Origin: Epithemia pelagica
Taxonomy: Eukaryota > Protista > Bacillariophyta
Direction of reading: 5' to 3'
Assembly: GCA_946965045.2 (NCBI GenBank)
Contig: OX337237.1
Span: forward strand, 3,224,001 to 3,288,000
DNA length: 64,000 bases
Both the position numbers and the translations under genes were made by a program. The notes beneath the pieces are model-generated. The model was not told the origin of the DNA. It saw nothing but the letters and a program-made list of their open reading frames with translations, and ran no database searches. This document shows, piece by piece, positions 1 through 37,781 of this stretch (position 1 is its first letter; each line of letters opens with the position of its first letter).

Positions 1-223
1 GACTGTGTCTCCTTGTCGTCTCTCATCATCAGTTATTTTTTTTTGCGAAACGAGATTGTGAGAAAGGGCGCGACTCCAAATTTGAGAATTGTTGCGCGGG
101 CGGCGGGCGCTCGAAAAAATTGCGCACGTACAAGTCTGCCCTTCCTGCACGAGGGCACGAACTTTGCCGCGCCAAAACAATGGTCGTCTGTCATTTATCC
201 GAGATGCAGATGGAGCACACATA

Positions 224-1705
224 CCGTCTGTCCGTCCATCCTGAGCACGACGCCTGGCAGGCACATCGGGGCGGCGGCCTCGCAGGCTCGAAATTCGGAA
301 GAGGTGTTGTGACAAGATCTTTCGAACATTCCGTTGGTTCGGTCAGCGCTCGCTCTCCCCCAAGCCAAGAAGAAAGAAGACAGCACTCCAAATTTTTTGC
401 ATTTCATCGAAGCCACACACACGCACCCCACAAACTGCCAAAAAAAAGATTCTGTTTTCTCTTGTTCCCTTCTTTGGTGCCCAGCAACAAAACATCAAAC
501 AAAGAAGGAGCAGATCATCGAAACACATGATTGACACACATCATCCCCATCTCAGAATCGAAGGATCCAAGGAGAGTTCAAAGTGCTATTAGGTTCGAGG
601 TTTAGCTCTATAAGAGAGTGCTGCTGCTGCTTGTTCCTCTTATTTTTGTGCATTGAATTCGATATATCCAACGACCGCATCCGTCTGTTTGTGCTCATAC
701 TATACACGTGGTGTTCCATTCCATTCACAACGACCGTGACAACGACACCATGCCTGCTACTATCACTACAAGTAACGCCACGGCTGGGGACGAAATTGAA
801 CAATTGACCTTGCAAGCAGATGCCATTTTGGAGACCCTACGATTGGAAACCCACAAATCGAACAACAACCACGACAACATCGAGGACAACAACTTTTCTC
901 CAGACGAAACGACCGCATCCTCTCCTACCGCACGTGCCATTTCCACTACACACCAATGGTTGCAATGGTCCAACCACACACAAGAACAAGAAGAATCCAC
1001 AGCGGCCGTGGTTCCATCCGATTCGCAATCCTTTTCCTCTTCGTACAGCAATCCTCCTATCAATACTAGCGACCAGCCACCAAATGTGGATGAGTTACAG
1101 CAGGAACAAGGAGAAGAACAAGCTTCCTCGTCGTTGTTGTCCTCCTGGTTGGCCCAGACTCGTCGTTCCGATCCTCTCCACCATTCAGAAAGTGACAATG
1201 ATGAGGATGCCATTCCTCCCATGGTGGTCATGGTCGGTGGTGGCTTACTCGGTGCCAATTTGGTGCAACACCAAGAATATTTGCAAGAACAAAAGACTCT
1301 CAAACACCATCAACAAGTGCAATCGCAATTGGCTAGCCAAGCGGCGGCCAAGGCGCGAGCCAATGAGGAACGACGCAAAGAACAAGAACGAAGCGAACGA
1401 CGACGACGACGACGCAGAGCGGCACTCGAACAGGAGCAGAACCACACGATGCAACTCGAGAACCACAAGCCGTTTGCCGTTACATGGTTGGATGTCGCCT
1501 TGCTGAGTGCTACACTGGTGGTTCTAACCAGTGTCGCTTGGCTCGTGTTTGGATCATCTCAACCACAATCATCTTCTTATTCTTCACAAGCACAGCAGCA
1601 AGCCCTCTTGTTGCATCCGGATGGACACATGATTACACCATTGGCCTCGTGGTATCCTCCAAGAAGATTCTAGGACTTTCGGATCCTTGCCGTCTCCGAT
1701 TCGAA
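224..1705 (+). repeat. Copy 1 of a ~1.5 kb inverted segmental duplication (partner 36325-37781)
   Basis: CCGTCTGTCCGTCC at 224 matches the reverse complement of 37768-37781. Similarity continues through the upstream region and CDS to just past the stop codon. Confidence 0.9.
750..1673 (+). CDS. Hypothetical coiled-coil protein with a single C-terminal transmembrane helix (paralog A1)
   Basis: ORF 708..1673, first ATG at 750. It has a Q/E/R-rich coiled-coil and a hydrophobic segment FAVTWLDVALLSATLVVLTSVAWLVFG. The reading frame is conserved in the inverted paralog at 36353-37267. Confidence 0.7.
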   Translation: MPATITTSNATAGDEIEQLTLQADAILETLRLETHKSNNNHDNIEDNNFSPDETTASSPTARAISTTHQWLQWSNHTQEQEESTAAVVPSDSQSFSSSYSNPPINTSDQPPNVDELQQEQGEEQASSSLLSSWLAQTRRSDPLHHSESDNDEDAIPPMVVMVGGGLLGANLVQHQEYLQEQKTLKHHQQVQSQLASQAAAKARANEERRKEQERSERRRRRRRAALEQEQNHTMQLENHKPFAVTWLDVALLSATLVVLTSVAWLVFGSSQPQSSSYSSQAQQQALLLHPDGHMITPLASWYPPRRF

Positions 1706-2709
1706 CCACACACACATGTACACGATCATGTTGCTGCTGGACGAGGTATTCCCTGCGGTGGCACAGTTGGCTACCGTGTCGAACGAGTTGCGCGCACGGC
1801 ACCCACACGAGAATGAACCAAAGGCCGGGTGCCAATACTCGTTGTGTGGTTCCGCAACTCGTGGTGGTGGTCGTTCCGTCACTCGTGGACCGAGACTGTC
1901 TGTGGCACATGCCGCAACAACCAGAAACGATTGCATAAAACAGAGCCACACAAGAACGGAAAGAGCTACATTGACTGCCCAGGAAAAGACTTGGGGCCAC
2001 CGAACCGCGACCTAGAATCGTTGTCCTCCTCCATTGCGCCGAATATCATGGTATCGTAGACTACACAGCTTCGTCTGGCTTGGGTCCACCGAACCGCGAC
2101 TGATAATCGACTCCCATCCTGATTACGCTCCATCGGTTGAGGGATACAGTTAAATATATGGTATACTATATTGTACATTATCGAAACGATGAGTAGGATA
2201 CGCAACTTCAACGTTGCGTGGAAATGCGTGGCGCTTGTCATGAATACAAGAAAATTGGAGACATCATCCTCATCTTTCTCATCCTCACACACACACGAGG
2301 TCCATGTCAGAGCGAGAGCATCCGATCTCTCCACCGTCATCTGCCTTGGTTCTCACTTGTCACTTACCTTCTCAACGCATCAAGAGCATCATCAGTAGTG
2401 AGAGTCATCGATCACCATCACCAACCAAGACAACGGACAGCCGCAATCGTGTCACGTCACAAACACCAGTGTGCATACCCACGATTAAGGATAGTTGTGG
2501 TGATTGTCATTTCTTTTTGGACAATCCAAACAAGACAAAACGATCGAGTTTCCGGAGAATCTGTTGCTCCCTCTCCAACAATATCAACAACAACAACAAC
2601 CTTCCGCTAGAACAACGACGAGACACACGTCTTGAGAGATTCTCTCCAACAACAAACAAGCCAAGAATCCATCCAAGAAGAATCCAAAGGTTCCCTTTCA
2701 TCTCGTGTC

Positions 2710-3663
2710 ATGGTGAATTCTGTTTTGGTTTGGACGATGCTGCTCTTGCTTGTCGTGTCACCCAGTCACGCCTGGCAGATATCGACACCACGAACCACTA
2801 CGACCAGTCCGTTCCACCATCCTGTTCGTCGTCGCCACTCCATGGCGGTCTTGTCCATGACACAGACGGAACGTTCGTCGTCTTCCCTGTTGCAACGGTT
2901 TCAATCCAGTGTCCAGGGGGCCATTCGCTTTGGCGTGGCCCAACGAGCCTTGCCCAATGGCACCTTGGTGCCTCGACCGCCGCAAGTCCAAAAACCACCG
3001 GCCTACTTGTTGCAACCCTTGACCTGGGTCGATCGATCCATTCATCAACGCGATTATGGAGGAGAAGTGCCAACATCAGCTGCACGGCAACGACGACCAG
3101 CACCACCACCACAAGAACAACTCGAACAAGAACAAGACCAAGACGAACAACAACTGGTGGAGGAGGAACCCGAGCGACCAGAACAAGAAGAAGAAGAAGA
3201 ACCAGAACAAGATTCAGCCGATGCTGGTACGTGGGACATTTTCCCCACCTACAAGACAACGAGAGCGACAAGGATGGAACCCACTCCAACCGTCACGGCA
3301 AACGACGACCGGATCGACGCAATCACACCAACGACTCCAGTGTTGGAGGTGGAAATGGCAACCACCACCACTACCACAGATCCTTCCATTGTGGTCAACG
3401 ACGATACCACAAGGACGACGACTGTATCCTCCCGAGCAACAACGGACGTACCACCGCCGCAGAACCACAACAACAAGGACCAGACGAGGAGCGAGATGGA
3501 GGACGACAGCCCAGACCACAAGATGAATGATGATGATGACGATGGCATGGTCGAGGCCACACAGAAAAAGGACGACGCCACGTCGTCTCGCGAGTTGGTG
3601 GGTGCTGGAACAGCAGTCAACGACCCAACAACGGTACCCTTTTTTCTACAGCAAACACGCTAG
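2710..3663 (+). CDS. Hypothetical protein with a probable bipartite (signal + transit peptide) plastid-targeting presequence
   Basis: ATG at 2710 is in frame with ORF 2632..3663. The N-terminus MVNSVLVWTMLLLLVVSPSHA|WQ is followed by an S/T/R-rich, acid-poor stretch. The body is acidic and low-complexity. Confidence 0.6.
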   Translation: MVNSVLVWTMLLLLVVSPSHAWQISTPRTTTTSPFHHPVRRRHSMAVLSMTQTERSSSSLLQRFQSSVQGAIRFGVAQRALPNGTLVPRPPQVQKPPAYLLQPLTWVDRSIHQRDYGGEVPTSAARQRRPAPPPQEQLEQEQDQDEQQLVEEEPERPEQEEEEEPEQDSADAGTWDIFPTYKTTRATRMEPTPTVTANDDRIDAITPTTPVLEVEMATTTTTTDPSIVVNDDTTRTTTVSSRATTDVPPPQNHNNKDQTRSEMEDDSPDHKMNDDDDDGMVEATQKKDDATSSRELVGAGTAVNDPTTVPFFLQQTR

Positions 3664-4446
3664 ACGTGAACACGAAATTACGTTCGACACACCTAAAACA
3701 TTCATTTATTCATTCATAAAATCCAAGAAGAGTCGACGACGACAAGGACCAACAGTACAAGATACAAGGTGTCAAGACTCGGAGATGGGACGGCGACAGA
3801 CCCCCTGACAACAACCACAACAACAACAACAAAAGACACTAGTACGGAGAGTCTTCAGCGCAGAGGTATGTGATGGTATCTCTCCTGTCGACCAATTTTT
3901 AGTAGACGGGCGACGACACCCACAATGCCTGCCTGGATGAGCCCTCTGCACGACCTTGATTCGTGATCGTACAGAACTAGTGTGTGACAGATCCGGGATG
4001 GATCGTCCCCGAAATGACAGTGTCAGGAGGATGGTGAGGGTGCGGAAGTGCGCTCCTCTTGGACGACGCTGAAACGAGTTCCACCAAAAGACACATGGCA
4101 CGGATGAAATGGTGAATGTGGACTTATCCAAAATTATTGTGCATCATCTAATACTACTAATAATAGAACTATAATCAAAAGACCACCAGTCTCCTACGAA
4201 AACGATTTCGCGGAACCGTTTTGCGACTAGGTAGGCACTACGAACATGACATGGCATTCATACTTTGCGAGTCAGTCGTCCGACACTTTTGAGATAGAGG
4301 GTCCCCACCCTCTTGGATAGCAGCATCCGGACACAATGACAACCGGTAACATGGGTACACACTAGTCATTTCGTGTGTTTCGTTCCCTCCCGATCCATGC
4401 ATTCCCGCTTAGGAACCATGGTTCGTTATTGTCAACGACGGAAGAA

Positions 4447-4449
4447 ACG

Positions 4450-4496
<47 letters not shown>

Positions 4497-4497
4497 C
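4447..4497. repeat. (ACA)n trinucleotide microsatellite
   Basis: Uninterrupted run of aca units. Confidence 0.95.
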
Positions 4498-4639
4498 GCG
4501 GTCTTTTTGGAATGTGCATGATGAATGTGTTGTTCTTGGGACGTGGACACATGTACGCACAAATGTCTTGCCGGGAGAACAATGGGGTATGTTAATAGCG
4601 TCCAATGACATTCCAGCGAGACAACATGTGTGTATTCTT

Positions 4640-6295
4640 TCAATTGAAGCCACGGTTCCAGGCCAGTTCCAATTCCTCCAGCAATACCGCATTGGTTCGT
4701 TTCAAAGTGGTGGTTGTTGTTGTGGTGGAAGTCACATTGATGGGATGATGCTGGTGGTTGGTATGAGAGACGAGCTTGAGCTTGGACGTTTGTGGTGATT
4801 GTGGGCGGCTCTTCTTGTTGTTGGAAGTCAAAGAAGGAGCATGATACCAAACGGATCGATCACAGGCCGATGGGACGACCCCGGCCACGGTATGAGGCTG
4901 CGGTCCCCGGTGTCCATTGGTATATTGCCACAGTGTATAATGCGACCATCCCGGTGGAATGGTGGGTTGGGTCGACTTTGTGGTCGTCCATTCGGCCCAC
5001 CAGAGGGGACACTGGTTCAGAATGGCATCGCCGCCACTTTGTTTCATGGAATCGCGCAACAATTTACCGCCATACAAGACGGGCCATTTCCCCGTGCGAC
5101 GATGAATGCCTTGACAAAAGGCACGGGCTTGCGGTAGGGTCATTTGGGTTCCGTGTGGATTTTCTTCCCAATCCAACACGAGCAGGGTCGTGTTATGGAC
5201 TGTGGGTTGCACGACGGACATAAAGTAGTTCAATTGTTTCGTCACATTGGTACCCGTGCCAAAATGATAGGCGCCCCACAACAAGCCAGCCGCCATGGCT
5301 TGTTTGCGCCGCTTATGATAGGTCGGATCGGTATAGCCGTAGCCTTCGGTACTCTTGGCAATCACGGCTCGAATCGTGCCGTGTCGGGCCAAGGTGGGAA
5401 AATCCACATGGGTTTGATAGTGCGAAATATCCAAGACCACATTCCACGTATTGACAGGAGGAAAGGAAGAGGATTGGCGGTTCTTGTTGCTCGAGGAGGA
5501 AAATGGCACGATGGCGTTGGGGGAGGATGGCAAGTGCCATCCCATCCACAGGGCCTGGGTCCACGTGTCAAGCCCCACAATGCCGTCCATGGGTGCCAGG
5601 CCGTGACGGTCTTGAAAGGCTCGCGTGGCTCGTTCCGTGCGAGGTCCAAACCACCCATCGACGCGCAAGAATTCGTCGTTGTTGTCGTCAAGTTGTTTCA
5701 AAAAGGCTTGCCAGGCGGCGACATCGGGCCCCTGACTCTGACCGCGATACGAGATCAAGAGGGTGACCAATCCATAATACTCGTAGGCCACCCGTAGGGT
5801 TTGGGGACCGACAATCCCATCCACCACCAATTGTCTGCCATGTTTGGATTGAAAGGCGCGCGTCGCCTGTTCCGTCTGCGGACCAAAGTCTCCATCGATG
5901 CGACCCACGACCGTCAGTTGTACCACGTCTCGCAAAAAGCCTTGCCACACGCGCACATACCAGGCATGACAGGCATTCTTCACCGGATGGTTGTGGGACG
6001 GTTGTCTGGACTGGGGTTGCAAAAATCCCATGGATTGGGCTTGCATCAAGGTGGGCGGATCGACCAGGCCCGAGGGTTGCACGAGTTGCGCAAAGCTAGT
6101 GTGATTGTTCCACCGTTGAACATGACCATTTTGATAGGCGGGAACGAACCGTCGTTGAAAGGCTTGCGTGGCGTCCCGCGTTTGAGGGCCAAACACACCA
6201 TCCACATTTACTACTTTGTAGTGTTGGTGTTGCTGCAAAAAGCATTGCCAGGCTTGCACGTCCGGGCCGGAACGACCGAGGCGCAACGGAGGCAT
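4640..6295 (-). CDS. Modular muramidase: three PG_binding_1-type domains plus a GH25 lysozyme catalytic domain
   Basis: 551-aa intronless ORF with three repeats of the pattern 'GPDV..WQ.FL...VDG.FGP.T..AT.AFQ...L..DG.VG..T'. These are followed by GH25 motifs VVLDISHYQ, KSTEG, GAYHF, LVLDWE, VLY, LWWAEW and WQYT. Confidence 0.92.
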   Translation of the reverse strand: MPPLRLGRSGPDVQAWQCFLQQHQHYKVVNVDGVFGPQTRDATQAFQRRFVPAYQNGHVQRWNNHTSFAQLVQPSGLVDPPTLMQAQSMGFLQPQSRQPSHNHPVKNACHAWYVRVWQGFLRDVVQLTVVGRIDGDFGPQTEQATRAFQSKHGRQLVVDGIVGPQTLRVAYEYYGLVTLLISYRGQSQGPDVAAWQAFLKQLDDNNDEFLRVDGWFGPRTERATRAFQDRHGLAPMDGIVGLDTWTQALWMGWHLPSSPNAIVPFSSSSNKNRQSSSFPPVNTWNVVLDISHYQTHVDFPTLARHGTIRAVIAKSTEGYGYTDPTYHKRRKQAMAAGLLWGAYHFGTGTNVTKQLNYFMSVVQPTVHNTTLLVLDWEENPHGTQMTLPQARAFCQGIHRRTGKWPVLYGGKLLRDSMKQSGGDAILNQCPLWWAEWTTTKSTQPTIPPGWSHYTLWQYTNGHRGPQPHTVAGVVPSACDRSVWYHAPSLTSNNKKSRPQSPQTSKLKLVSHTNHQHHPINVTSTTTTTTTLKRTNAVLLEELELAWNRGFN

Positions 6296-6590
6296 TCTTG
6301 ATTGTTGGTTGATGGACTAATAGGTAGTTGGAATCGAGGCAAGTAGGCACGGTCGATCAACTTTGGCTCCGAAAATAATAGGGGTATGTGCAATCGGGTG
6401 AGCTGACAAAGAATCAGAGGCAACGAAGGAGCAATCCAGAGGCTTGCTGGAGCTCGTTTGATTTGTCTTGGTTTTGTTGTTGTTTGGTAGAACGGTTTGT
6501 GTTTCTTCGCTTGGGGATCGAACGGCGCTTGGATTTCCTGCTGGCTTGTCTGTTTCGTGGTTTGTTCCTCGAGTGCACTACGAGTTTTCG

Positions 6591-6714
6591 ACAATGCCTG
6601 GACTGCGAAATCTCCAGTCTCTCTCTCTCTCTCTCTCTCTCAGTGCGGTTGATTTGCTTGTTTGTTGCGGCAAATTTCCAAACTACAACACAATGCCTGG
6701 ACTGCGAAATCTCC
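6591..6714. repeat. Exact 25-bp direct repeat (ACAATGCCTGGACTGCGAAATCTCC) flanking a (CT)n microsatellite
   Basis: Copies at 6591-6615 and 6690-6714, in the intergenic region upstream of the GH25 gene. Confidence 0.9.
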
Positions 6715-7700
6715 TTTCCAAAAGGATGATACTCGTAGGATGTTGTTGTTGTTCGACACAAAAGAGTCCTCTTCTTGTAGGATGCTGCTGCTACTGGGCA
6801 CATTCGTCACACACAGACAGAGCCATCACATTATATTTCTTTGTTTGTCGCTGTTGTGTCATGGTCTTGGACCGTCGCCATTCGGAACAAAAATCTTGTC
6901 GGCAGAACGCCCCGCCAACTGGCCCGGCAGATGTTCGTCTGTTATCTGTCCGACGACCGTTCACGATTCGGGATTCGGGATTCGGGACTGGGTCGACCGC
7001 GCATTCAACTCGCGCAAACGAATTGAATCGGCCGCCACGTTCCGTTGAAGCGCCGGGCAACCAGGGTCCCACCAGTCGTTGCTCTATGTGCTTCATTTTT
7101 TGGAGTTTGCAACGACGAGCCACATGCAACAAACACAAAGTTGCCTTCTCTGATACGGCATTCTCTCTTCTTCTCGCTATCACTTTTTCAGCTCTGTCTC
7201 TTCGGTTGGTTGGTTCTTCTGGTTTTTCCAACAACAACAAGCCATATTCCAAAAAACAGTCATTCTCGTCCTTCCGGTGATGCTGCTGCATCCGAGTTCG
7301 AATCCCACAATTCCAACGGAACACGCGGATCGGTAAAAAGTTTGCCTCCTCACGAGAAAGACTAGGGGGCACACCAGTTTGTGAAATTGTGCGTGTGCTG
7401 CAAACTACATTGCTTCTCTTTTGGGGGGTTTGTCCACCAAGAGTTGAGACCAAACAACAAGAACAACCACAAGTCGCTCTATACGTGTGTTTCTCTTGGA
7501 GCGTACGGTCGGTGGTTTCTTGCAGCTACAACAACAAACAACAAGACTATCCTTGGGGGTGTGTGTGTTGTTCCTCCAGGAGAGACTTGAGAAGAAGAAA
7601 ACAACCCAACGAATCAACACCAACAACAACAACAACGAACACAATATTTCCAAGCGAGCAAGCCACAGCAAAAAAAGAACTTGCAAGCAACCAAGCAACC

Positions 7701-9266
7701 ATGGCGGCAGAAACCAGCACTGCGTCCCGAACGGCATGGCCGTATCGATCCAGTCTCTTGCTGCGTCCTTGCAGCAACTCCCAACGACGATCCAAATCAT
7801 CATCCTTGTCCAAAACAGAAGCCACTCCACAACCACAACCACAACAAGCAACCACACTTGTTTCGAAAAAGGCAGCCGCCCTCTTGGCGTGTCCGATTCG
7901 TCCCAAACGACTCCTGCTACGGCAACAACCACGCAGCAAAACTGCTGGTGATGATGAGGAGGAGGTCAGGGCTCCTTCCCCCACCACCACCACCACAACC
8001 ACGAAAGAGCCACCGACCACCACCCGAACCAGACGAACCATTCTTCGGAACGGAGCGACATGCATGCAATCATCCTCCCACCGGATCGACCGTACGGCAC
8101 CTCCCATCCAACAACAGAGCAGCAACACTGGAATACCATCCACTTCTTGTTTGGTGGAACCATCCCAACAAAAAAAGAAGAAAAAGACGCTCACCTTTGC
8201 CCTCGATGAGTCTACCAAGAATCATGACACGGAGGATGATGCAAACGAACGACACTTGATACATCGTTTGTCGCAATTGCAATTGGAAACCCGTCACGAA
8301 CAAGCCCAATTGCGACATTTGGTCCATCAACTCAAGCAACAGCCGCCATCCAGTAGTGGTATTTCCAATCGACCCCCGAAGCATCGTCCCTATCCCTGGT
8401 CCTATTCGGGAAACGACCATCCTCACAATCATCATCACAATCATGTGGACGATACCAATCAAACCATGGTGACGCATTCCACCTCGGCCTCGACCGCCTC
8501 GGGCTTTACCCTGTCCACCACGGCCTCGTCCTTTGTCGTGGCCACCTATCAAGTCTTGACGGGCGATTGTGGTTGGTTCGGGTCGTCGTCCAAACCAACA
8601 ACTGCGGCGGGTGGCAGCACACCGTGGTGTTGTGGCACTGCTAGCAGTAGTCGGTGGTGTACCCTCTGTCCCGACGGAACCTGGGCTCAACAAGAACGAC
8701 GGAATGCCCGCAAACTCAAACGACGACGCGGTGGAGGACGACCTCGACCCTCGGCATCGCCCCCACCACCACCGGTCAAAAGCCTGTGGCACTCGCAACC
8801 CCCCACATCGTTTGTGCACATTCCCAGCACTACTTCGGAACAACCACAACTGTCATTATCCTCTCCATTGTCGTCTCCCCTTGCGTGTACTCCAACGTCG
8901 TCTTCTTCTCCGTCTCATCACTATCATGCGCAAGACCGGACCGTTCCACTCTTGGGATTGGAAGAAGAACAAAGCATGGCCCAGTCGGAATTGTCCACCT
9001 TTTTTGCCTTTGGCACTACTACTACTGGTAGAAATAATCCGCAGCAGAACCAAAAGAATCGTGGGGTGGTTTCATCATCACCACAAAATACTAAGGGCCG
9101 TCCCCTCTTTACCGGCACCAGCTACGCCAAGCACACTGGGAAAACCAACGACACGGACGACGACGACGAGGATTCCGATCCTCATGCCTTGTGGGCCGTC
9201 ATGGCACGACGCCAACGACGATTGGAACAACAACGACGACAGGCACAACGACAAGCACAATCCTAG
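7701..9266 (+). CDS. Hypothetical low-complexity (S/T/P/Q/R-rich) protein
   Basis: Long ORF 7389..9266 with a plausible ATG at 7701 (MAAETSTAS). No recognisable domain; short coiled-coil segments. Confidence 0.6.
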   Translation: MAAETSTASRTAWPYRSSLLLRPCSNSQRRSKSSSLSKTEATPQPQPQQATTLVSKKAAALLACPIRPKRLLLRQQPRSKTAGDDEEEVRAPSPTTTTTTTKEPPTTTRTRRTILRNGATCMQSSSHRIDRTAPPIQQQSSNTGIPSTSCLVEPSQQKKKKKTLTFALDESTKNHDTEDDANERHLIHRLSQLQLETRHEQAQLRHLVHQLKQQPPSSSGISNRPPKHRPYPWSYSGNDHPHNHHHNHVDDTNQTMVTHSTSASTASGFTLSTTASSFVVATYQVLTGDCGWFGSSSKPTTAAGGSTPWCCGTASSSRWCTLCPDGTWAQQERRNARKLKRRRGGGRPRPSASPPPPPVKSLWHSQPPTSFVHIPSTTSEQPQLSLSSPLSSPLACTPTSSSSPSHHYHAQDRTVPLLGLEEEQSMAQSELSTFFAFGTTTTGRNNPQQNQKNRGVVSSSPQNTKGRPLFTGTSYAKHTGKTNDTDDDDEDSDPHALWAVMARRQRRLEQQRRQAQRQAQS

Positions 9267-9647
9267 AGAAGAAGAGAATACGGCACTGTACAAAGCTTTT
9301 TCTTCTTTCTCTTTGTTAAAATAGCTACAATCACACACAAACACACGCAAACAATGGAGTGGAACAAGAATCGTACCATTCGTGGGGCTGGTAACACAAG
9401 TTTCCATGGGTTGCTAGTAGTGTTGTTTGGTGTACAATCTCTCCTTCCTCTCTCGCTCTGGTATGTGTGTGTGTGCTCCATCTTGGTGCGGTGGTCCTGT
9501 TTGGCTCCATGTCGTTTTTTTTTGGAGGGACCCCCCAAATCCATTCTATCTTGTGTGCATTCCTCCTCCTCTTCCTCATTGACGAGGAACGCAAAACTCC
9601 ATTCGTTCCTTGCCTGTGCACACGGCCAACTTGTGCGTGGTTCCTCC

Positions 9648-10544
9648 TTACAAACTGGTACTCGTATAGACGGCCGCAAAATACCCCAAGGTCACCAGTA
9701 GGACCACAACACTGCCGGTAGTAGTGTGGAACATGTCGTGGGGACCGGCGGGGACCAATTCTTGGACCATGTCGTGCCAGGACTGCCACAGTCGAGACGC
9801 AAGAGTGGAATGATCCTTGTGGTCGTTATTGTTGTCGTCGTTGTGGTTGTCGTCGACCAAAACGAGGGGAAGGAGCCATCGTACCAGCAAGGCTCCCAAG
9901 GTCATGGTGGCCACAAGTTGGGTCCATGTCACGGACTGGAACGAAACCAAAGAATATCCGTTGGAGGACGAACCGACCAGGAGGCACACCAACAAGACCA
10001 AGAATACCATTCCACAGACGGCCAGAATCCGTAGTGACTTGTTCGTTGGTTGGTTGGCCTGCTTGGTGTTGTCCGTGCCAGTTGTGTCGTTGTCATTGGA
10101 ATAATACACGAGTTGGACTTGCGCTATTAGTGATTGCATCCAGGACGCTCGTTGCAAATGTTCGGGACGCAAGGCAATGGGTGGATTGCTGCTGGTGGGT
10201 TTCGTTGTCTTGTCAACGTTTTTATCGTCGTTCTTGTCCTTGTCGTTGTCGACCGGAAGTGGCTTGGTCAATTGGACCCAATACCGTCCGGTCGGCATGT
10301 GATAGTCGACAATCCAGGCCAATTGACCATTCAAGACACCCTTGCGACTCGTCGTGCCCTGAATTTGGACAAGGACAATGTTGCGTTGCGCATGGTTGGA
10401 CGACGAGGACGACGACGAGTACAGCGGGGGTAACCAGTGATGCGGATCGCGATACTCGTACTCCGTCTTGTTGGACGTCTGGCAATTCTCTTTGTGCTGC
10501 TTTTGGTCCTCCTCGGCCAAAAAGTCAACGGATGGAAAGGTCAT
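9648..10544 (-). CDS. Hypothetical membrane protein with an N-terminal small beta-rich (SH3-like) module and about 3 TM helices
   Basis: 298-aa ORF. VLVQIQG...LNGQLAWIVDY...GRYWVQL...IALRPEHL matches a module I recall as recurrent in stramenopile proteins. Hydrophobic segments follow. Confidence 0.65.
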   Translation of the reverse strand: MTFPSVDFLAEEDQKQHKENCQTSNKTEYEYRDPHHWLPPLYSSSSSSSNHAQRNIVLVQIQGTTSRKGVLNGQLAWIVDYHMPTGRYWVQLTKPLPVDNDKDKNDDKNVDKTTKPTSSNPPIALRPEHLQRASWMQSLIAQVQLVYYSNDNDTTGTDNTKQANQPTNKSLRILAVCGMVFLVLLVCLLVGSSSNGYSLVSFQSVTWTQLVATMTLGALLVRWLLPLVLVDDNHNDDNNNDHKDHSTLASRLWQSWHDMVQELVPAGPHDMFHTTTGSVVVLLVTLGYFAAVYTSTSL

Positions 10545-10640
10545 GGTGGTGATGGTCCAACACTATACACTGCAGAACACACACACACTTTCACCCTCTT
10601 GCTTGTTGGTTTGGTTACCCCCTAACTTATCACCGGAACA

Positions 10641-10919
10641 TTGATGCGGGTGAAGGTGCGAGTGCGGGGGGTAAGCCCCCGCACTCGCATCAACATTCCT
10701 ACTAGAAACTTAACAGTTATCCGTAGTTTTGTCATGCGAGTGTGCTTCAACGGATAGAATGACAGACGATTACCGATACTCTTCAGCTTTGGCGCGGCAA
10801 ATCGTTGCCCTCGCAGCCCTTGCATGCCCGCAGTGACTTGCACGCAATTTTTGCGAGCGCCCGCGCTAAATTTTTAGATTTGGAGTCCCCCCTCGCACTC
10901 GCACCTGCCCCCGCACCAA
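10641..10919. mobile_element. MITE-like ~280-bp element with imperfect terminal inverted repeats and a perfect internal hairpin
   Basis: Left end TTGATGCGGGTGAAGGTGCGAGTGCGGGGGG aligns to the reverse complement of the right end (TTGGTGCGGGGGCAGGTGCGAGTGCGAGGGGGG). A 14-bp perfect stem at 10657-10670/10676-10689 has a GTAAG loop. No TSD was seen. Confidence 0.45.
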
Positions 10920-11543
10920 AAAGTAGCCTGTTACGCCATGCATTGTAATAAAATAGATTGCATTCCATTTTGTCTCTGTGGATGTTCCTCGTCCTTCTCG
11001 AGATCAGATTGTCGATGTGTGAATGACGTGTTGTGCGCGACTGTTTTGTCCGTAAGACAGACAGTCCGTCAGTCTGCTTGTCGGTAAAACGAGCTCTCTC
11101 CTGTTGTGTCGGCCGGCTCGTTCCTTCCAGCGCGGGAAACCGCGCAACGAAGGATGGAACCGAGCCTGTCGGATGGTACACACTTCAGTACTGTTTGTTC
11201 GAGTGAGTCGATTTACTATAGGATTAAACGTAAAATGGAGTTCGGTCGGCGCTTCCGGTCTCTTTTGTTTGTACTATGAAATCGTGTGCGCCGCACAAAG
11301 CAAACAAGCGAGCGGCCAGTTCCGTTGCGACGTTTGTGCGTCCGTGGATCTCTCGACGACAACAGTCGAACAACAGAGTAAAAAAGTGTGCATGCTGTTC
11401 TCCATGTTCTATTGAGGCTTGTAAAGAAAAAGGGAGAGAGTCCGACAAAAGAGACAAGAAATCTATAGATAGCATCCAGCAACAACCACAACCAAAGTTG
11501 CCAAGCCAATCCACATCCACAACAACACCAACAACACAACATC

Positions 11544-11575
<32 letters not shown>

Positions 11576-12062
11576 CAATCCGTCTTGGCAACCTTGGTTT
11601 GAAACGATTCCAAATTGTGGCACGATCGCAGCAACGTTCGTTGGCTGCTTGTGCAGTATTCTAGACCCTTTTCGATCATTTGCTCCTCCGTCGTGAATTG
11701 GGGTGTGCTGCTCGAGAGCGTGTGTGTATGTGTGTGTGATTCCTGGAAAGGAAGAAAAGAAGCACACTCCTCGCCACAGCCTGACACAACAAACAACAAC
11801 AACAGAGAGACACTATTGATTTCTTGGAGTTGGTGTTGCTTCTCCTGGTTCCGTAATTCCTCTAGTATTACAACAAGAAACGGATTGTGCAAGCCAAAAG
11901 CAGACTGGAAAATAAGGATCGATTCCTCTTTTTTTCTGGTTGGACAATTTCGTTTGTGGGTATTGCCGTCTTGTGCAAAACGCAACACAACCAAAAAAGA
12001 AGAAAGCACAAACAACACAACACACAGACAGTTCGTTGCAGTATTGACTGTTCCATTGGATC

Positions 12063-13304
12063 ATGACGACGATTCAAGATCGCTTGTTGGAAGCGCGGGG
12101 CGATGGCATGGAGGAACAAAAGGAGGAATTGCCAGATCCAGCCTTGGTGGTATCAGCAGCCACTGCGGCAGCAGCTGGAGGAGGAGTACCAGTGGGTGGT
12201 CCCTTGGCACCTTCTTCTCGGGCGGCCATGATTCCTGGCAAACCCGAACCCCTTTCGCCCGACAAGGTCGGTGACGAACATGGCTTTCGAGCGCAATTGG
12301 AAGGCTTGGCCAAGGCCGTGTTTGGAGGATGCGGCAGTGTCATGGACTTTTTTGTGCCAGATAAAAGTCGAACGGCACCACATCCTGCAGGATATCCTCC
12401 TGCTCATGCCGCACATGCGGCGGCGCACTATCCACCACCCCCTGGAGCATCGCCATATGGTGGTGCTGTTGGTGGAGTCTATCCATCAACCATGCCGCCA
12501 CAACCACCCGTGCCGCATCCCCACGATCCGATCGCGGCCGCCTATGGACCCCATTATGGGCCACTGCATCATGCCCCGGATCCAGCCCTGCATCCTGCGC
12601 ATCATTCCCCCTATCATGCTCATCCGTCCATGATGATGCCACCGGGCGCCTATCCTCATCCCCCTCCCCACTACCCTCCTTATGCCCCGCAATTGGTGTA
12701 CAATCAAGAACCGGCCCCGGCCTTGAGCATTGCCGAAGAATTGCGTCAATTGGCCTTGCAACAACAAGCGCCGCAGATTCATCCGGAATATGCCGCACCA
12801 CGGGATATTCCCAAATTTTTGGGCGAAGAAGCGGGCTTTGACGATGACAACATTTCGGCCATTTCCCAACATACCTTGGAAGAAATGGCCCGTCGGAATG
12901 CCCGGATTGCTGCCGCCAACGCGAATGCGGCGAATCAAAATAATGCACAACGAGCAGGAACCGTGGCACCGGCGCCGGGGACTCTTCATCCCCTGTCGCA
13001 ATCGCAACAATCACAGCAAGGGCCCGCCTCCTCGTCGGCTTCCTATGGACCTACGGCAGTCGAAGCCGCCGCACCGACTCGACGACCGTCGTCGCACTCG
13101 GCGCCGCCCACCACGACGAGGACTACAATTACGACAGCAGCACCGATGACCACGGATCGGCCACCCTCTCCCACACGGACCCAAAGCTTGTCCACCTCGA
13201 CGCCACCCAGTACCAACAATACCAACATGAACAACAACAATAATACGAATCTCAAGAATCCACCCTCCAACAACAACGACAATGACAAGACTGTATCCTT
13301 ATAA
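12063..13304 (+). CDS. Hypothetical Pro/His/Tyr/Ala-rich disordered protein
   Basis: 413-aa ATG-initiated ORF with coding-like composition. No domain recognised. Confidence 0.7.
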   Translation: MTTIQDRLLEARGDGMEEQKEELPDPALVVSAATAAAAGGGVPVGGPLAPSSRAAMIPGKPEPLSPDKVGDEHGFRAQLEGLAKAVFGGCGSVMDFFVPDKSRTAPHPAGYPPAHAAHAAAHYPPPPGASPYGGAVGGVYPSTMPPQPPVPHPHDPIAAAYGPHYGPLHHAPDPALHPAHHSPYHAHPSMMMPPGAYPHPPPHYPPYAPQLVYNQEPAPALSIAEELRQLALQQQAPQIHPEYAAPRDIPKFLGEEAGFDDDNISAISQHTLEEMARRNARIAAANANAANQNNAQRAGTVAPAPGTLHPLSQSQQSQQGPASSSASYGPTAVEAAAPTRRPSSHSAPPTTTRTTITTAAPMTTDRPPSPTRTQSLSTSTPPSTNNTNMNNNNNTNLKNPPSNNNDNDKTVSL

Positions 13305-13885
13305 GACAAACGTGGAACAACATTCCAGATACTGTATGTAGAGACAACGAGACACAGACAAGACACCTACCCCAATACAAACTCTCTTGGAAGAGTACCA
13401 CGCGTCGGAACGAATCATCCACAGGTCGTGTGATTGGGGTGGTTCGGTGTTTTGTCCTTTCCTCTCGATACAATACGAAACGTAAGTGTGTGTGTGGACC
13501 ACGTATGGGTCACACGGAGAACGTTTCACACAAGAACGACACGGACCAAAGAAGGACTGACACGCCACAGCAGCAAGAGCAGCAGGTGACGTTGGCAAAC
13601 GAATGGTGGCGAAGCCTTTCACAAGATGGACTGTTTTGTTTGTATACCATATTAGGTACGAGCCCTCCGTTTTGTTTCGAAACGAAGATGCATGTAGTAG
13701 TAGAATGATAGAACAAGACGTTTTCGTAGTAGTACTATGTTTTTTTTTTGGTTCCAGACAAAAGTGTGCCTGGAAGGAAGGATACAACCATGTGTGTGTG
13801 TTTATAACTGGTTTCCAGTCCCCCCTGGGGAAACCCTGTTCTGGATTGTCTAGGTGTGCGTTACTAGATGACATTCACTTTTTGT

Positions 13886-15349
13886 TTAATCGACTGCCAT
13901 TACAAAGTCCAAGACACTTTGACAAAACTCCAGGTTGTTATGAAGCCTTATCGTCGCCGTCGTCGACTCGTTCTTGTTGTTCTGGAGCGGGTGGTGCAAG
14001 TCAACCACTGGTGGTTGTGTTGGGTGTGCTTGTTCATGTTGTTCTTCTTGCAGGACAATCATGTCTTCCAAAAGATACAAGAGGGGACAATGATGAATGC
14101 GATGCATCCAACCAATGTCTTGTTCACTGTACCACAACAAGCCAAGATAGGAGGAGGCGGATAAATCGTTCTTGTCGTCGTCATCGTTCTTGTGGACCTT
14201 TGGGTGCCTGGAGGGGTCCTCCTCCTCCTCCGCTAGTAGTGGACTGCTGGATGATACGGAAGTCCTTCTCCTCCTCTTCCACCACAAAGCAGAAGACGAC
14301 CATGGCTCCTCCTCGTGCTGTGGTGAATTACAATGTGTTTGTGAAAAGGAAAAAGACGACGACGACGACGATGAGAGACACGACGAGAATCGAACTCGTC
14401 GTCGTCGTCGAGAAGATCGTGACGGGGTCACTTGGTTCGGGAGGCTTTGCCGCCGCCGCCGCCATGGTACAACAAGAATGGGTTGCCACCAACATGTGTT
14501 TGTTCCAGTCATGGTGGTGGTACCAGACGGTCGTCCCTGGTTGGAACGACGACGACGACTCCAGGAAAGGACGGCAAGGGCCGAAGAAGACCACCCCCAT
14601 CCTGGATGCACCAATCTCACTAATTGCCCATTCACACCGTCCTCACTTGTTGTTGTGGGGTGCTGAGACGCATCGTCGGAGGACGATGAGGATGAAGAAG
14701 AAGAAGAAGTTGTCGAAAAGGGCGAGACGGGTCGGGAGGGTGCCAAGGATGACTCGGACAAAGAATAGCAAGGGTCTTGTTGTTGTTGTTGTTGTTGTTG
14801 GTTGTCGTCCTTTGTGGACATTGGTGCAGTCGATACGGTGTTGCTGCTGGGTTGTCGCAAACAAGATTTGAGGAGCCGTGGTGGTGAAGAAGATGATGAT
14901 GATAATGGTTGGCCGCCTGGTGCTTTGCCTTGTGATCGTTGTCGTGGAGGAAGGGATAGGAGAGACCACCGTTGTTGTAGGAGTGGTCGTGACACGGAAC
15001 ACCAATAACTGTAGTGTTGTTGCCAAAACGATCCAGCCACTTGGCGTCGTTCACGTTGGCGTTGTCGCCGACGACAATGGTTCCTCCACAAAAGACGACA
15101 TTCTTGGCACAATGTTGTTGTCGCCGTCGGCGTGGTGCTTCGCCGACTGGACAATGACAAACGACTCGGTGGGACACGAGGACGACGAGAGTGTGATTGT
15201 GACGACGAGGAGGAGGAATCCTTCGTTGGTACCTTTTTCTTGCATACAGACACGGAAGGATGACCATTCGACTTGTCGTCGTCGTTTGAGTCCAGCGGGT
15301 CGTTCCAGACTGGCACTTCGTCTTCTTCTTCTTGTTTGAGTTGAGACAT
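13886..15349 (-). CDS. Hypothetical S/R-rich protein, possibly a divergent member of the VxF...WY family
   Basis: ORF 13886..15664 with plausible ATG at 15349 (MSQLKQEEE). It contains RRRVRFS and LLWYSEQDI but no clear GLE motif. Confidence 0.55.
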   Translation of the reverse strand: MSQLKQEEEDEVPVWNDPLDSNDDDKSNGHPSVSVCKKKVPTKDSSSSSSQSHSRRPRVPPSRLSLSSRRSTTPTATTTLCQECRLLWRNHCRRRQRQRERRQVAGSFWQQHYSYWCSVSRPLLQQRWSLLSLPPRQRSQGKAPGGQPLSSSSSSPPRLLKSCLRQPSSNTVSTAPMSTKDDNQQQQQQQQDPCYSLSESSLAPSRPVSPFSTTSSSSSSSSSSDDASQHPTTTSEDGVNGQLVRLVHPGWGWSSSALAVLSWSRRRRSNQGRPSGTTTMTGTNTCWWQPILVVPWRRRRQSLPNQVTPSRSSRRRRRVRFSSCLSSSSSSSFSFSQTHCNSPQHEEEPWSSSALWWKRRRRTSVSSSSPLLAEEEEDPSRHPKVHKNDDDDKNDLSASSYLGLLWYSEQDIGWMHRIHHCPLLYLLEDMIVLQEEQHEQAHPTQPPVVDLHHPLQNNKNESTTATIRLHNNLEFCQSVLDFVMAVD

Positions 15350-17640
15350 GATGATACGAGAAAACGGAATGACTGGTAGTGCTGAAATAAGATAGATAAC
15401 GAGAGAAACAGATTGAAAAGACGAACCAAAAAGACAGAATGAAGGAATGAATGAGCACGACACTCTGCAAACAATGAAACGAGAAAAAACGCAACGGTCC
15501 GCAAACAAACAAAACTCACATGTCAAGAAGAAGAAGAGGGGGAAACACAATGGAGAGGAGGATACGAATGAATGCGAAGGTTGTCTTCTCGTTTGTTGCA
15601 CAAAGACAGAGGGCTTGACCACGCACAATGATGCCTCTTTCCACTCCGGAGGAGGAAGGAGCACTTTCTATTCTACGACCGCCCCTACCAGTAGTAGTAG
15701 ACAAGTAGGAGAGTTCGTTTTTACTTTGCACCCAGAGTTTGTTTGCAGATTGCAAACACGAAGCAGATTCCTTGTTTCGTTGGTCTACTACACCAATGGT
15801 TTTGGGGACATGTCTGCCGATTCGGATTGACGGCGTGTTGCGTGTTGCGTGTTGCGTGTTGTTTGTTGCCGCTGTGGTTGCGCGTTGCGCAGGAATCTTA
15901 GCCATCACACCCGTGCGAAACCGGAACGTCGTCATTTCGTCACGTCAATATCGGTCAATGAACAATCACATAGAACGGATGATCGAACGACTCCTAGCTA
16001 GAGCCTGTCTCCATCTCGCATGAGAAGTACCTACTCAGGAAGCCCGACGTCCATAAAAGTGTAATCCTGTGTCCCACTGGAACCACTGGCAAAGCAGAAA
16101 TGCACCAAGAACATATGTTGTGGACGGCAGACGCCTCCGCCGCCCATTGCGGTTCATTCATTTGTCGAGCTCTAGCAGCTACCTGTTCCTCTCTCTAGCT
16201 AGCTCCCTAGCTACCGTAGTTCTCGAAAGCCCCTGTCGTCCTTCTGGACCAGAAATGGAACAAGATTTCTAGGTAGGCCACACAATATCCTTTTTCATCT
16301 GTAGAACGATCTTGGAACAGAGAGTGGAACGAACAGGGTTTCAATTTTATGCTCCATATGTGTCTATGATTGGAGAACCAAGGCAACAACGAGACAGAAG
16401 AGTCAATCGGTCAGTCACGTCATGTCAAGATAATTTCAAACTGCCAGACACGAATGGATTCGGAAGCAAGTTGTAGAAGTCGCCTCGAGGCATTCTACAA
16501 CGAGCATGAATGCACTCTGACTTTTCTGCCTCGGGGCATGAGAGGCACAGAATTCAACATCGAGAATTCTGCTTCCTTGGTCGTTCCGCGCAATTCTCTG
16601 GTTGCGGTGTGGCAGCTGTCGGCGGCTGAAGTTCTGCGCGCGTCCTTTTCGCGACTCAAGAATGACCCAAGATTCCCGAAAAGATGCTAGGCCATAAAAA
16701 AGGAAACCATGGACTACTACTGGAACGAGGAACAGTTCAGAGGATTGACAATTTAAAACAATAGCAAACAAAAAGGAAAAAGAGCTTTCTGTACAAAAGG
16801 TTTCCGACGACACACTGTTATCAGTCGTGTTGGGCTTGTGCTAGCATGGCAGCCAGAAAGCAAGAGGGTTGGGATAGTTGGTGGGAGGTGGCGGTCATGA
16901 GAAGATTCGCCGCCTCTTGTTCCAACGCTTGTCGTCGTACTAGTTCGGGGCTGCTGCTGTTCCTCCACAAACCATTCAATCGTCGTCGGTGCTCTTGCAC
17001 TTGCCAATGAGCATCTTGAATATCCAAAACACGATGGATCAATTGTTGCCGACATTCCTTCTTGTCCAAATACAAGGCACGAATGGTCGTCTTTTCCATA
17101 CCCACTCGCTCCTCATCCAGAACTTGTTTCAAGAGTTGCCAATCTTGCAGATTCTCGTGCAAAAAGGTCGTGAGTGTGTCCTCGTCATGATGATTTCTTG
17201 GGGTTCTTCTTGTTTTTTGGCTCGACGAGGACGATGGGGTGGTTTCACTGGTTCTTGACAAGGTACAGGTTATATGCAAGCGTTCCACGATATTGCGATA
17301 GGAAGATGGATTTGAGCGGTGACCCGATCGTCGTTCATCACGCAAGATTCGCTTGGCCGTGGCGATATGATGGTCCTTGAAAGCCTTGTATTCGTCCGAT
17401 GTGTACCAAAATGTGGTCGAATCGCTTTCTACTCGTTCTTCAAGATCTTGTTGTTGTTCGTACCACAAATTGGCCGATTTGTCAAAGGTGACTTGTTTTC
17501 TTCTTGGGGTGGTTACTGTCGCAGGATCTGTCGTTGTGAGTTTGATGAGACTGGAGACTTGATGATCATGATGGTGTGGTGGTAAGTGTGGGAGGAGACT
17601 CGCGACCTCGACGGTGGAGGAAATAGAATGATCGTCACTG

Positions 17641-36324: not shown

Positions 36325-37781
36325 ACCTGTTCCAATCAGAGATGAAGGATTCCTATCTTGGCTGAAACCAGGAGGCCAAGGGAGTCATCATGTGTCCATC
36401 CGGATGCAACAAGAGTGCTTGCTGCTGAGGTTGTTGTAGTGAAGAAGACTGTGGTTGGGATGATCCAAACACGAGCCAAGCGACACTGGATAGAACCACA
36501 AGTGTAATAATCAGCAAGGCGACATCCAACCATGTCACGGCAAACGGCTTGTTGTTTTCGTGTTCGAGTTGCTCCTGTTCGAGTGCCGCTTGGCGTTGTC
36601 GTCGTGCTTCCCGTCGCTCGCGTCGTTCTTGTTCCTTGCGTTGCTCCTCATTGGCTCGCGCCTTGGCCGCCGCTTGCGTGGCCAATTGCGATTGTATTTG
36701 TTGATGGTGTTTGAGAGTCTTTTGTTCTTGCAGATATTCTTGGTGTTGCACCAAATCGGCACCCAATAAGCCACCACCAACCATGACCACCATGGGAGGA
36801 ATGGCATCCTCATCATGGTCACTTTCTGCATGGAGGAGTGGATCGCAACGACGAGACTGGGCCAACCACGAGGACAACAACGACGAGGAAGCTTGTTCTT
36901 GTCCTTGTTCCTGCTGCAACTCATCCAGATTTGGTGGCTGGTCGCTATGGATAGGAGGATTGCTGTGCGAGGAGGAAAAGGATTGCGAATCGGATGGAAC
37001 CACGGCCGCTGTGGATTCTTCTTGTTCTTGTGTGCGGTTGGACCATTGCAACCATTGATGTGTGGTCGAAATGGCACGTGCGGCAGGAGAGGCTGGGGCC
37101 ATTTCGTCTGGAGAAAAGTTGTTGACGTTGTCGACGTCCTTATGGTTGTCGTTGGACAACCTTTGGGTTTCCAATCTCAAGATATCCAAAATGGCATCTG
37201 CTTGCAAAGACAATTGTTCAATTTCGTCCCGAGGCTTGTTGGTCGTAGTAGAAGTTTTTGTAGCCATGGTGTCGTTGCCACTGTCGTTGTGATTTTGCGA
37301 ATGAAACACCACGTGTAGTATGAGCACAAACAGACGGATGAGACGCTTGGATATCGAATTCAATGCACCAAAAAGAAGAGGAACAAGCACCAGAAGTAGC
37401 AGCAGCACTCTCGAATAGAGCGAAACCTCGAAGCTAATATCCCTTTGGACTCTGCTTGGATCCTTATTATTCTGAGATTGTGATGATGTGTGTCAATGAT
37501 GTGTTTCGATGATCTGCTCCTTCTTTGTTGGATGTTTTGTTGCTTGGCACCAAAGAAGGGAACAAGAGAAAACAGAATCTTTTTTTTCGGTGCGTGTGTG
37601 TGTGTGTCTTGGATGAGCTGTTGTTCGAGCCAAAAATTTGGAGGCCTCTGGTTGGTCTGTTTGTGCTCTCTTTTGGGGGGAGAGTGAGCGCCGACCGAAC
37701 AAACGGAATTTTCGAAAGATCTGGTCACAACACATCCTTCGAATTTCGAGCCGGCCTTGCTCGGGGGGGACGGACAGACGG
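36325..37781 (-). repeat. Copy 2 of the inverted segmental duplication (partner 224-1705)
   Basis: Reverse-complement similarity to 224-1705. Confidence 0.9.
36353..37267 (-). CDS. Hypothetical coiled-coil/C-terminal TM protein (paralog A2 of 750-1673)
   Basis: Near-identical blocks are shared with A1: LQADAIL, HQWLQW, IPPMVVMVGGGLLG and FAVTWLDVALL. Confidence 0.7.
   Translation of the reverse strand: MATKTSTTTNKPRDEIEQLSLQADAILDILRLETQRLSNDNHKDVDNVNNFSPDEMAPASPAARAISTTHQWLQWSNRTQEQEESTAAVVPSDSQSFSSSHSNPPIHSDQPPNLDELQQEQGQEQASSSLLSSWLAQSRRCDPLLHAESDHDEDAIPPMVVMVGGGLLGADLVQHQEYLQEQKTLKHHQQIQSQLATQAAAKARANEEQRKEQERRERREARRQRQAALEQEQLEHENNKPFAVTWLDVALLIITLVVLSSVAWLVFGSSQPQSSSLQQPQQQALLLHPDGHMMTPLASWFQPR

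Follow-up and report, generated by a model that had tools for sequence, protein, structure and literature searches.

Genes for GH25 muramidases have been transferred independently from bacteria to Selaginella, aphids, fungi, an archaeon (Aciduliprofundum), and phage WO, with vertical inheritance thereafter (PMC4241558; Metcalf et al. 2014, eLife). The abstract of that study attributes an antibacterial action to the lysozyme family that was transferred (PMC4241558). Here, we describe a GH25 gene in a 64,000-nucleotide stretch of DNA from the diatom Epithemia pelagica (assembly GCA_946965045.2), referred to below as the window. The gene occupies positions 4640 to 6295 on the minus strand, and its predicted product joins three peptidoglycan (PG)-binding repeats to a GH25 catalytic domain. 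An initial annotation of the window, made from the sequence, had proposed that the gene arose by horizontal gene transfer (HGT) of a bacterial PG hydrolase and was later ameliorated. That proposal was upheld by the nesting of the gene in a phylogenetic tree, by its nuclear integration, and by its host-like base composition. Overall, we favor, at a probability of about 0.72, a functional nuclear diatom gene that stems from one old transfer of Bacteroidota type and that encodes a leaderless PG hydrolase used against bacteria.

Domain architecture and active site

The coding sequence (CDS) runs without interruption from an ATG start codon through 551 codons to a TGA stop codon, and this continuous open reading frame (ORF) is consistent with an intronless gene. 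The encoded protein matched Pfam family Glyco_hydro_25 (PF01183) at amino acids (aa) 289 to 461 (E value, 2.5e-31; score, 109.8 bits; cutoff, 27; profile positions 2 to 174 of 180). It also matched PG_binding_1 (PF01471) in three stretches (E value, 2e-31; score, 108.3 bits; cutoff, 23). Matches in NCBIfam were partial, were to peptidoglycan hydrolases, and were all under the cutoff. The repeats were placed by phmmer at aa 5 to 65, 110 to 171, and 184 to 250, and each forms a helical bundle in an AlphaFold (AF2) model that was built on a 30-sequence alignment. Both searches point to three copies of the PG_binding_1 family.

Among solved structures, the GH25 part matched, by sequence, the fungal muramidases 6zm8, 2x8r, and 6zmv, cellosyl (1jfx), and phage and clostridial lysins. 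In the alignment, LDISHYQ, which contains Asp289, pairs with FDISGWQ of 6zm8 and FDISNHQ of 2x8r; LDWEENP, which contains Asp375 and Glu377, pairs with LDIEYNP of both. Asp289, Asp375, Glu377, and Asp479 are invariant across the 30 aligned sequences. The AF2 model gave a barrel with a predicted local distance difference test (pLDDT) score of 91 to 98 and three helical binding modules with moderate to good scores; the linkers and aa 490 to 531 were disordered. The first 22 Foldseek matches to the model were all GH25 structures, the best being 1jfx (E value, 3.4e-13; TMt, 0.74). The profile match, the predicted barrel fold, and the catalytic Asp and Asp-x-Glu residues all assign the domain to GH25. 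Hence, the three PG-binding repeats and the GH25 domain with its DISHYQ and DWE motifs, which the initial annotation had read from the sequence, are borne out by Pfam and by alignment to solved GH25 structures.

The protein opens straight into repeat 1 (aa 3 to 92; positions 6020 to 6289; all features of the gene are on the minus strand), which is supported by Pfam, by phmmer repeats, and by AF2 helices H11-22, H37-50, and H80-88. A comparison of start codons placed its N terminus at the same start as that of bacterial single-repeat proteins. A disordered loop of ~20 aa precedes the last helix of this repeat, with low pLDDT at aa 59 to 70 in the AF2 model. Repeat 2 (aa 108 to 171; 5783 to 5974) and repeat 3 (aa 184 to 250; 5546 to 5746) were likewise found by Pfam, phmmer, and AF2, and the strongest Pfam match lies in repeat 3, at aa 188 to 246. 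A disordered Ser-rich linker (aa 251 to 280; 5456 to 5545; pLDDT of <50 at aa 257 to 276), which differs in length across haplotypes and species in alignments, connects the binding module to the GH25 muramidase domain (aa 281 to 485; 4841 to 5455). That domain is supported by PF01183, pLDDT, Foldseek, and rates of substitution (dN/dS). Within it, positions 5429 to 5431 encode Asp289 of the DISHYQ motif, which aligns with the first conserved acidic active-site residue of solved GH25 enzymes, and positions 5165 to 5173 encode Asp375-Trp-Glu377, which aligns with the GH25 DxE catalytic motif in 6zm8 and 2x8r. A low-complexity insert of host type follows (aa 490 to 531; 4703 to 4828; pLDDT of <50); in alignments, it is missing from the bacterial relatives and is shorter in other diatoms. 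It contains seven Thr codons in a row (4706 to 4726), which are the poly-T tail of the initial annotation, and this Thr run is not the same in the two haplotypes. The protein ends in a conserved helix (aa 535 to 548; 4652 to 4693), in which L542 and W546 are kept from bacteria to diatoms.

The ATG is preceded by an in-frame TAG at 6317 to 6319. This stop codon lies eight codons upstream, separated from the ATG by 7 sense codons, and excludes any N-terminal extension that does not involve splicing. No hydrophobic leader was seen at the N terminus, in agreement with the initial annotation, which had noted both this stop codon and the lack of a signal peptide. At the orthologous loci of Epithemia clementina and of an Amphora-like diatom, eukB, the limits of the ORFs place upstream stop codons 5 codons and 1 codon before the ATG, respectively. 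The region upstream of the ATG in the window yielded no evidence of a hidden signal-peptide exon, and conservation between haplotypes there is heterogeneous.

Bacterial ancestry and distribution among diatoms

To place the protein among its relatives, we inferred a maximum-likelihood tree of the GH25 domain from 144 sequences (supports are given as ultrafast bootstrap/SH-like approximate likelihood ratio test). The diatom sequences formed one clade (100/99). This clade lies inside a clade (96/91) with sequences from Roseivirga and other Roseivirgaceae, a Cyclobacteriaceae genome, a Bacteroidota metagenome-assembled genome, and metagenome proteins, and the 96/91 clade itself falls within a larger one (98/89). 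Eukaryotic sequences are thus nested, with support, inside bacterial diversity, a pattern that indicates HGT. The bacterial members of the 96/91 clade are mostly proteins of ~290 to 300 residues with one PG-binding repeat followed by GH25 (PGB-GH25). They start with M-L-L-K-I-G-S-Q-G-x-x-V-K-D-W-Q, the same start as that of the diatom proteins, and have no leader. Because the leaderless start is common to the bacterial and diatom proteins, the missing leader is ancestral and was not lost in the alga. The repeats of the diatom proteins have A-W-Q (V-W-Q in repeat 2 of the window protein) in place of the D-W-Q of the Bacteroidota proteins. GC content at third codon positions (GC3) is 0.61 for the diatom gene, compared with 0.49 to 0.68 for host genes and 0.35 to 0.43 for Roseivirga-type genes.

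Three GH25-only metagenome proteins (P0126, P0172, and P0216) fell beside the diatoms in the tree. We regarded this placement as unreliable, given long branches, supports of 87/65 and 93/76, and identity below that of the Bacteroidota protein P0122. Another metagenome protein, P0121 (684 aa; from a JGI contig of 3090 bp), consists of three GH25 domains in tandem, with ~42% identity each to that of the diatoms, which is an unusual multi-catalytic architecture.

In Roseivirga sp. E12, the PGB-GH25 gene stands in the order DnaX, HD-domain protein, PGB-GH25, GH64 glucanase, PIF1-like helicase. On a Cyclobacteriaceae chromosome, the ORFs agree with this arrangement in size and order, and DnaX recurs near the PGB-GH25 gene on a related metagenome scaffold. 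The bacterial locus is chromosomal and not a prophage. The neighboring ORF in Roseivirga sp. E12 (L011:6999-9434) has an N-terminal GH64 β-1,3-glucanase domain, and an ORF of similar size lies at the matching relative position in L010 (7002-9482), a correspondence of size and position only. β-1,3-Glucan, as chrysolaminarin, is the storage polysaccharide of diatoms. Given the GH64 neighbor and this diatom store, bacteria of the donor type may be diatom-associated feeders; if so, this would provide an ecological route for the transfer.

We searched for further carriers among ~15 billion proteins, with a word-based search of 5.8 billion clusters at 90% identity and a phmmer search of 1.84 billion representatives at 50% identity. 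These searches covered protein databases, with unannotated genomes outside their scope. Only two more full-length relatives came out of the word search: P0002 (49% identity), which is annotated in Epithemia clementina as a "hypothetical protein," and P0003 (47%), from eukB. Below these two came bacterial proteins, each with a match either to GH25 or to the repeats. The exhaustive phmmer search with the GH25 domain returned 9552 matches, with identity falling from 67% for P0003 to ≤51%; above 51% lay only the cluster of the window protein and that of P0003. Diatom genomes and transcriptomes were present in the searched databases, as judged from their matches to Vta1 and TauD queries; apart from the carriers, these many diatom sources yielded nothing. 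The carriers in these data are three diatom lineages, all raphid pennate. Together, the word search and the phmmer search indicate that the gene was not broadly inherited over stramenopiles and is absent from most other eukaryotes; broad vertical inheritance was the finding that the initial annotation had named as contrary to a transfer. The annotation had also implied that this alga acquired the gene privately, a view that is contradicted by the three-repeat orthologues of Epithemia clementina and of a third pennate diatom.

On a 6.6-Mb contig, the gene for P0002 is flanked by those for UGGT and GTP cyclohydrolase I. P0003 and its allele P0262 are on two haplotigs of one assembly, amid Copia elements and a TauD gene that, among named taxa, is nearest to that of Amphora coffeiformis. 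The named matches of the Vta1 protein encoded in the window include Amphiprora, Amphora, and Seminavis. The three diatom proteins agree in start position, in having three repeats, and in the site of the C-terminal insert. We found no synteny among the three species beyond the lysozyme gene, the other matches being to Copia only.

Nuclear location, second haplotype, and selection

The gene is on a 2.06-Mb contig amid eukaryotic genes. Genes in the window include Vta1, Yippee/Mis18, and cyclase-phosphodiesterase fusions, together with Copia retrotransposons, and microsatellites lie on both sides of the lysozyme gene, (AAC)16 in the 3′ flank (4450 to 4497) and (TC)12 at 6618 to 6641. The initial annotation had described this same setting of host genes and microsatellites. 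The ORFs that adjoin the lysozyme gene have no Pfam domains and hence are of no use for taxonomy. Read data were available as Logan contigs, which are short unitigs that are informative on depth and alleles and not on transcription or long-range continuity. In the runs with even coverage (X1 and X2), depth was ~100 to 170 over the gene and ~90 to 135 over the flanks.

The 90% protein cluster of the window protein has a second member, P0389, encoded on a 776-kb contig (L167) of another assembly. That contig is collinear with positions 1 to 16282 of the window at 80 to 96% DNA identity, bears the lysozyme gene in the same place, and also carries the Vta1 orthologue. The P0389 allele is intact (553 aa) and has 92.7% amino acid identity to the window protein. 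All of the variant bases in the runs of the window organism (23/23) agree with the P0389 allele. We therefore assign this allele to the same organism, as a second haplotype or strain. We concluded that the gene is physically integrated in the host chromosome and is not a contaminant. A chimeric assembly, which the initial annotation had listed as a possible refutation, finds no support in the depth, in the collinear contig, or in the 23 variants.

A stretch of 282 bp just 3′ of the stop codon (4345 to 4626), within which the (AAC)16 repeat lies, is missing or replaced in the second haplotype or strain; the difference was seen both as a joint (4344>4627) in runs X2 and X4 and as a gap in the alignment to L167. 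Other joints in Logan contigs were set aside when their sides were 20 to 23 bases, since they fall in low-complexity repeats. One segment of L167 (reverse complement, ~5600 to 7210) matches both positions 1 to 1679 of the window (81%) and, inverted, positions 36356 to 37722 (82%); the window therefore contains this sequence twice, in diverged copies. The region at 7000 to 7400, which lies between the lysozyme gene and a divergent ORF that starts at 7389, is 96 to 100% identical between haplotypes, compared with ~91% in the lysozyme CDS. A promoter or regulatory region used in common could explain this, as could mosaic divergence of the haplotypes alone. Runs X3 and X4, for which the library type is not on record, gave patchy coverage of gene bodies over 3000 to 8500 and left much of the intergenic region at 6500 to 7400 empty. 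This pattern would fit RNA-type libraries, and hence transcription of the lysozyme gene, a point that the contigs cannot show.

Synonymous divergence (dS) between the window allele and the second haplotype was 0.169, and the ratio of nonsynonymous to synonymous divergence (dN/dS) was 0.23 overall. By region, dN/dS was 0.10 for GH25, 0.31 for the PG-binding region, and 0.42 for the C-terminal part. Gaps within the CDS between the two haplotypes occur in blocks of 6 bases. Between species, dN/dS was ~0.17 to 0.22, at saturated dS. The ORF is intact at 475 to 553 codons in three species and five alleles. These values indicate that the lysozyme gene is maintained by purifying selection, which is strongest on the catalytic domain. 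In the allele pair of the third diatom, on the L002 and L005 haplotigs of assembly ERZ25042306, the proteins are 475 and 490 aa long and their last residues differ; dN/dS for this pair is 0.39, on few changes.

History, function, and comparison with known systems

In the simplest history, the gene would have entered a pennate diatom ancestor once, from a marine Cytophagales-type Bacteroidota relative (Roseivirgaceae/Cyclobacteriaceae-like), and the donor gene would have been a one-repeat, leaderless, chromosomal PGB-GH25 gene. After the transfer, the binding module would have expanded to three copies, the low-complexity insert would have arisen near the C terminus, and the base composition would have drifted to host values. 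Since Epithemia clementina and the third diatom have the same derived three-repeat layout, the transfer is old and was followed by vertical inheritance, with patchy retention in this species, the Amphora-like diatom, and Epithemia clementina. In the encoded protein, three PG_binding_1 modules on flexible linkers could provide multivalent anchoring to murein, and the GH25 N-acetylmuramidase barrel would cut the β-1,4 bonds of bacterial walls between N-acetylmuramic acid and N-acetylglucosamine (MurNAc-β-1,4-GlcNAc). The enzyme is presumably active. Its target is plausibly the murein of bacteria on or in these biofilm diatoms, with antibacterial defense or antagonism as the most likely use; the initial annotation had suggested a weapon or digestive enzyme against phycosphere bacteria. 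Because no orthologue has a leader peptide, the enzyme would leave the cell by a non-classical export route or be released on cell damage.

Several observations weigh against this proposal. No signal peptide or other targeting signal was found in any orthologue; the cytosol is thus the default location, and access to extracellular bacteria is left unexplained. The four runs that hold the gene are all from one study, and none is on record as RNA. MMETSP and EukProt transcriptome sources were matched by Vta1 and TauD and yet were not among the GH25 matches; therefore, the gene is either rare or rarely expressed. A tree of the individual PG-binding repeats did not resolve their relationships, the domains being too short, and more than one repeat may already have been present in the donor. 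Lastly, no particular bacterium can be singled out as the donor, and P0126, P0172, and P0216 lie beside the diatoms with weak support.

The strongest alternative is an intracellular role. The enzyme would then act on cytoplasmic bacteria or endosymbionts, such as the cyanobacterial diazoplast of Epithemia, or on imported murein fragments as a source of nitrogen and carbon. All orthologues lack a signal peptide and have stop codons just upstream of the ATG, purifying selection implies that some function was kept, and a cyanobacterial endosymbiont is present in one of the carriers, Epithemia clementina (PMC12377750). However, at least two other diatom lineages have the gene, which therefore probably predates the Epithemia symbiosis. 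Diatoms are not known to be phagotrophs, which also counts against this role, and we regard it as unlikely. Host-encoded peptidoglycan remodeling of foreign origin has an analogue in mealybugs, in which HGT-derived peptidoglycan genes are in use. In a comparable way, a cytosolic triple-binding murein hydrolase might police bacteria inside diatom cells and, acquired before the nitrogen-fixing symbiosis of the Rhopalodiaceae, may have served in the Epithemia lineage as a preadaptation for controlling or dividing the cyanobacterial endosymbiont; we consider this scenario speculative and improbable.

The source of the gene can also be questioned. Endolysins typically have a leaderless layout of binding module plus GH25, the fold matches include solved phage endolysins, and GH25 is common in viral contigs, in which we found 106 relatives; the gene might therefore have come from a phage or another virus, as a true endolysin, and not directly from a bacterial chromosome. 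Against this, the top viral matches have only 39 to 44% identity, those with the highest scores do not extend beyond the GH25 part, the tree places viral sequences outside the clade of Bacteroidota and diatoms (96/91), and the nearest bacterial genes are in a conserved housekeeping-type locus by DnaX that has no phage genes. We found neither a lysis module with a holin nor closest relatives in phages, and a viral source seems improbable. The initial annotation had compared the architecture to bacterial autolysins and phage endolysins; the bacterial half of this comparison stands, the nearest genes being chromosomal genes of marine Bacteroidota, and the phage half does not, viral contigs being more distant. 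Contamination or a chimeric assembly would be a natural suspicion for a protein family that is overwhelmingly bacterial, particularly as the Logan contigs over the region are short and none covers the entire gene with both flanks. It is nonetheless hardly credible in view of the 2.06-Mb contig with its eukaryotic genes, the depth equal to that of the flanks, the separate 776-kb contig on which the second haplotype or strain has the same gene and neighbors, the orthologues by UGGT, MutS, and Copia genes in two other diatom assemblies, and the host-like GC3 and host-type poly-Thr insert. That the ORF is a nonfunctional remnant of bacterial DNA, now in decay after its transfer, might be suspected from the lack of any run on record as RNA among those holding the gene, but it is very hard to reconcile with an ORF that is intact in three species and five alleles, with invariant catalytic residues, with a dN/dS of 0.10 in the catalytic domain at a dS of 0.17 to 0.22, and with haplotype gaps that come in 6-base blocks within the CDS. 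We therefore retain a functional gene of Bacteroidota type as the preferred explanation.

Diatoms are coated with bacteria, some of which, notably Bacteroidota, attack them or eat their polysaccharides. A diatom lysozyme derived from that bacterial group would be a concrete, assayable player in conflicts of the phycosphere. The gene extends the repeated capture of GH25 by non-bacteria to stramenopile algae, and it offers a clean example of fate after transfer, in which a binding domain multiplied, a low-complexity insert arose, composition moved toward that of the host, and selection persisted over deep divergence in few lineages. The lack of an export signal poses a testable question of cell biology, namely, how and whether the enzyme meets peptidoglycan. 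Our search of the available literature for links of GH25 or lysozyme to diatoms and HGT found nothing relevant. In a genome study of Epithemia, the HGT candidates number 118 for E. clementina and 97 for E. pelagica (PMC12377750); its text mentions neither lysozyme nor peptidoglycan, and its HGT table could list the Epithemia orthologue.

Of the described proteins, the single-repeat PGB-GH25 proteins of Roseivirgaceae and Cyclobacteriaceae (L006 to L012, P0004, and P0122) are the closest supported neighbors of the diatom proteins. They have the same domain order, leaderless start, and C-terminal L..FW helix, with 41 to 45% identity over both domains. They differ in having one repeat rather than three, no low-complexity insert, a much lower GC3, and a chromosomal setting with DnaX and GH64. 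Cellosyl of Streptomyces coelicolor (1jfx) and the fungal enzymes 6zm8 and 2x8r match the barrel (Foldseek E value, ~1e-13; TMt, 0.72 to 0.75), with the DxE motif and the N-terminal Asp aligned. However, their identity is only 23 to 26%, and their solved chains, of ~207 to 217 residues, match the GH25 part only and thus show no binding repeats. Cellosyl and the fungal GH25 muramidases are also secreted, unlike the leaderless diatom protein. The phage endolysins Cpl-1 (1h09), phiSM101 (4krt), and CTP1L (5a6s) are likewise leaderless, combine wall-binding and GH25 modules, and give a clear fold match, but their binding modules are C-terminal and of other types. That of phiSM101 is SH3, and that of Cpl-1 is choline binding (title of PDB 1oba). 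In addition, the diatom gene is not part of a lysis cassette, and its viral relatives are farther from it than the Bacteroidota genes are.

The transfers described previously (PMC4241558) resemble this one in the GH25 family itself, in a non-bacterial clade nested in bacteria, in later vertical inheritance, and in a proposed antibacterial use. They differ in that the recipient here is a diatom, and thus a stramenopile, a group not mentioned in that study; in that the donor side is marine Bacteroidota; and in that the diatom protein, known here from its sequence, kept the PG_binding_1 module and expanded it to three. Diatoms are thus a new recipient lineage, and the triple binding module is a new architectural variant, of a known type of GH25 transfer.

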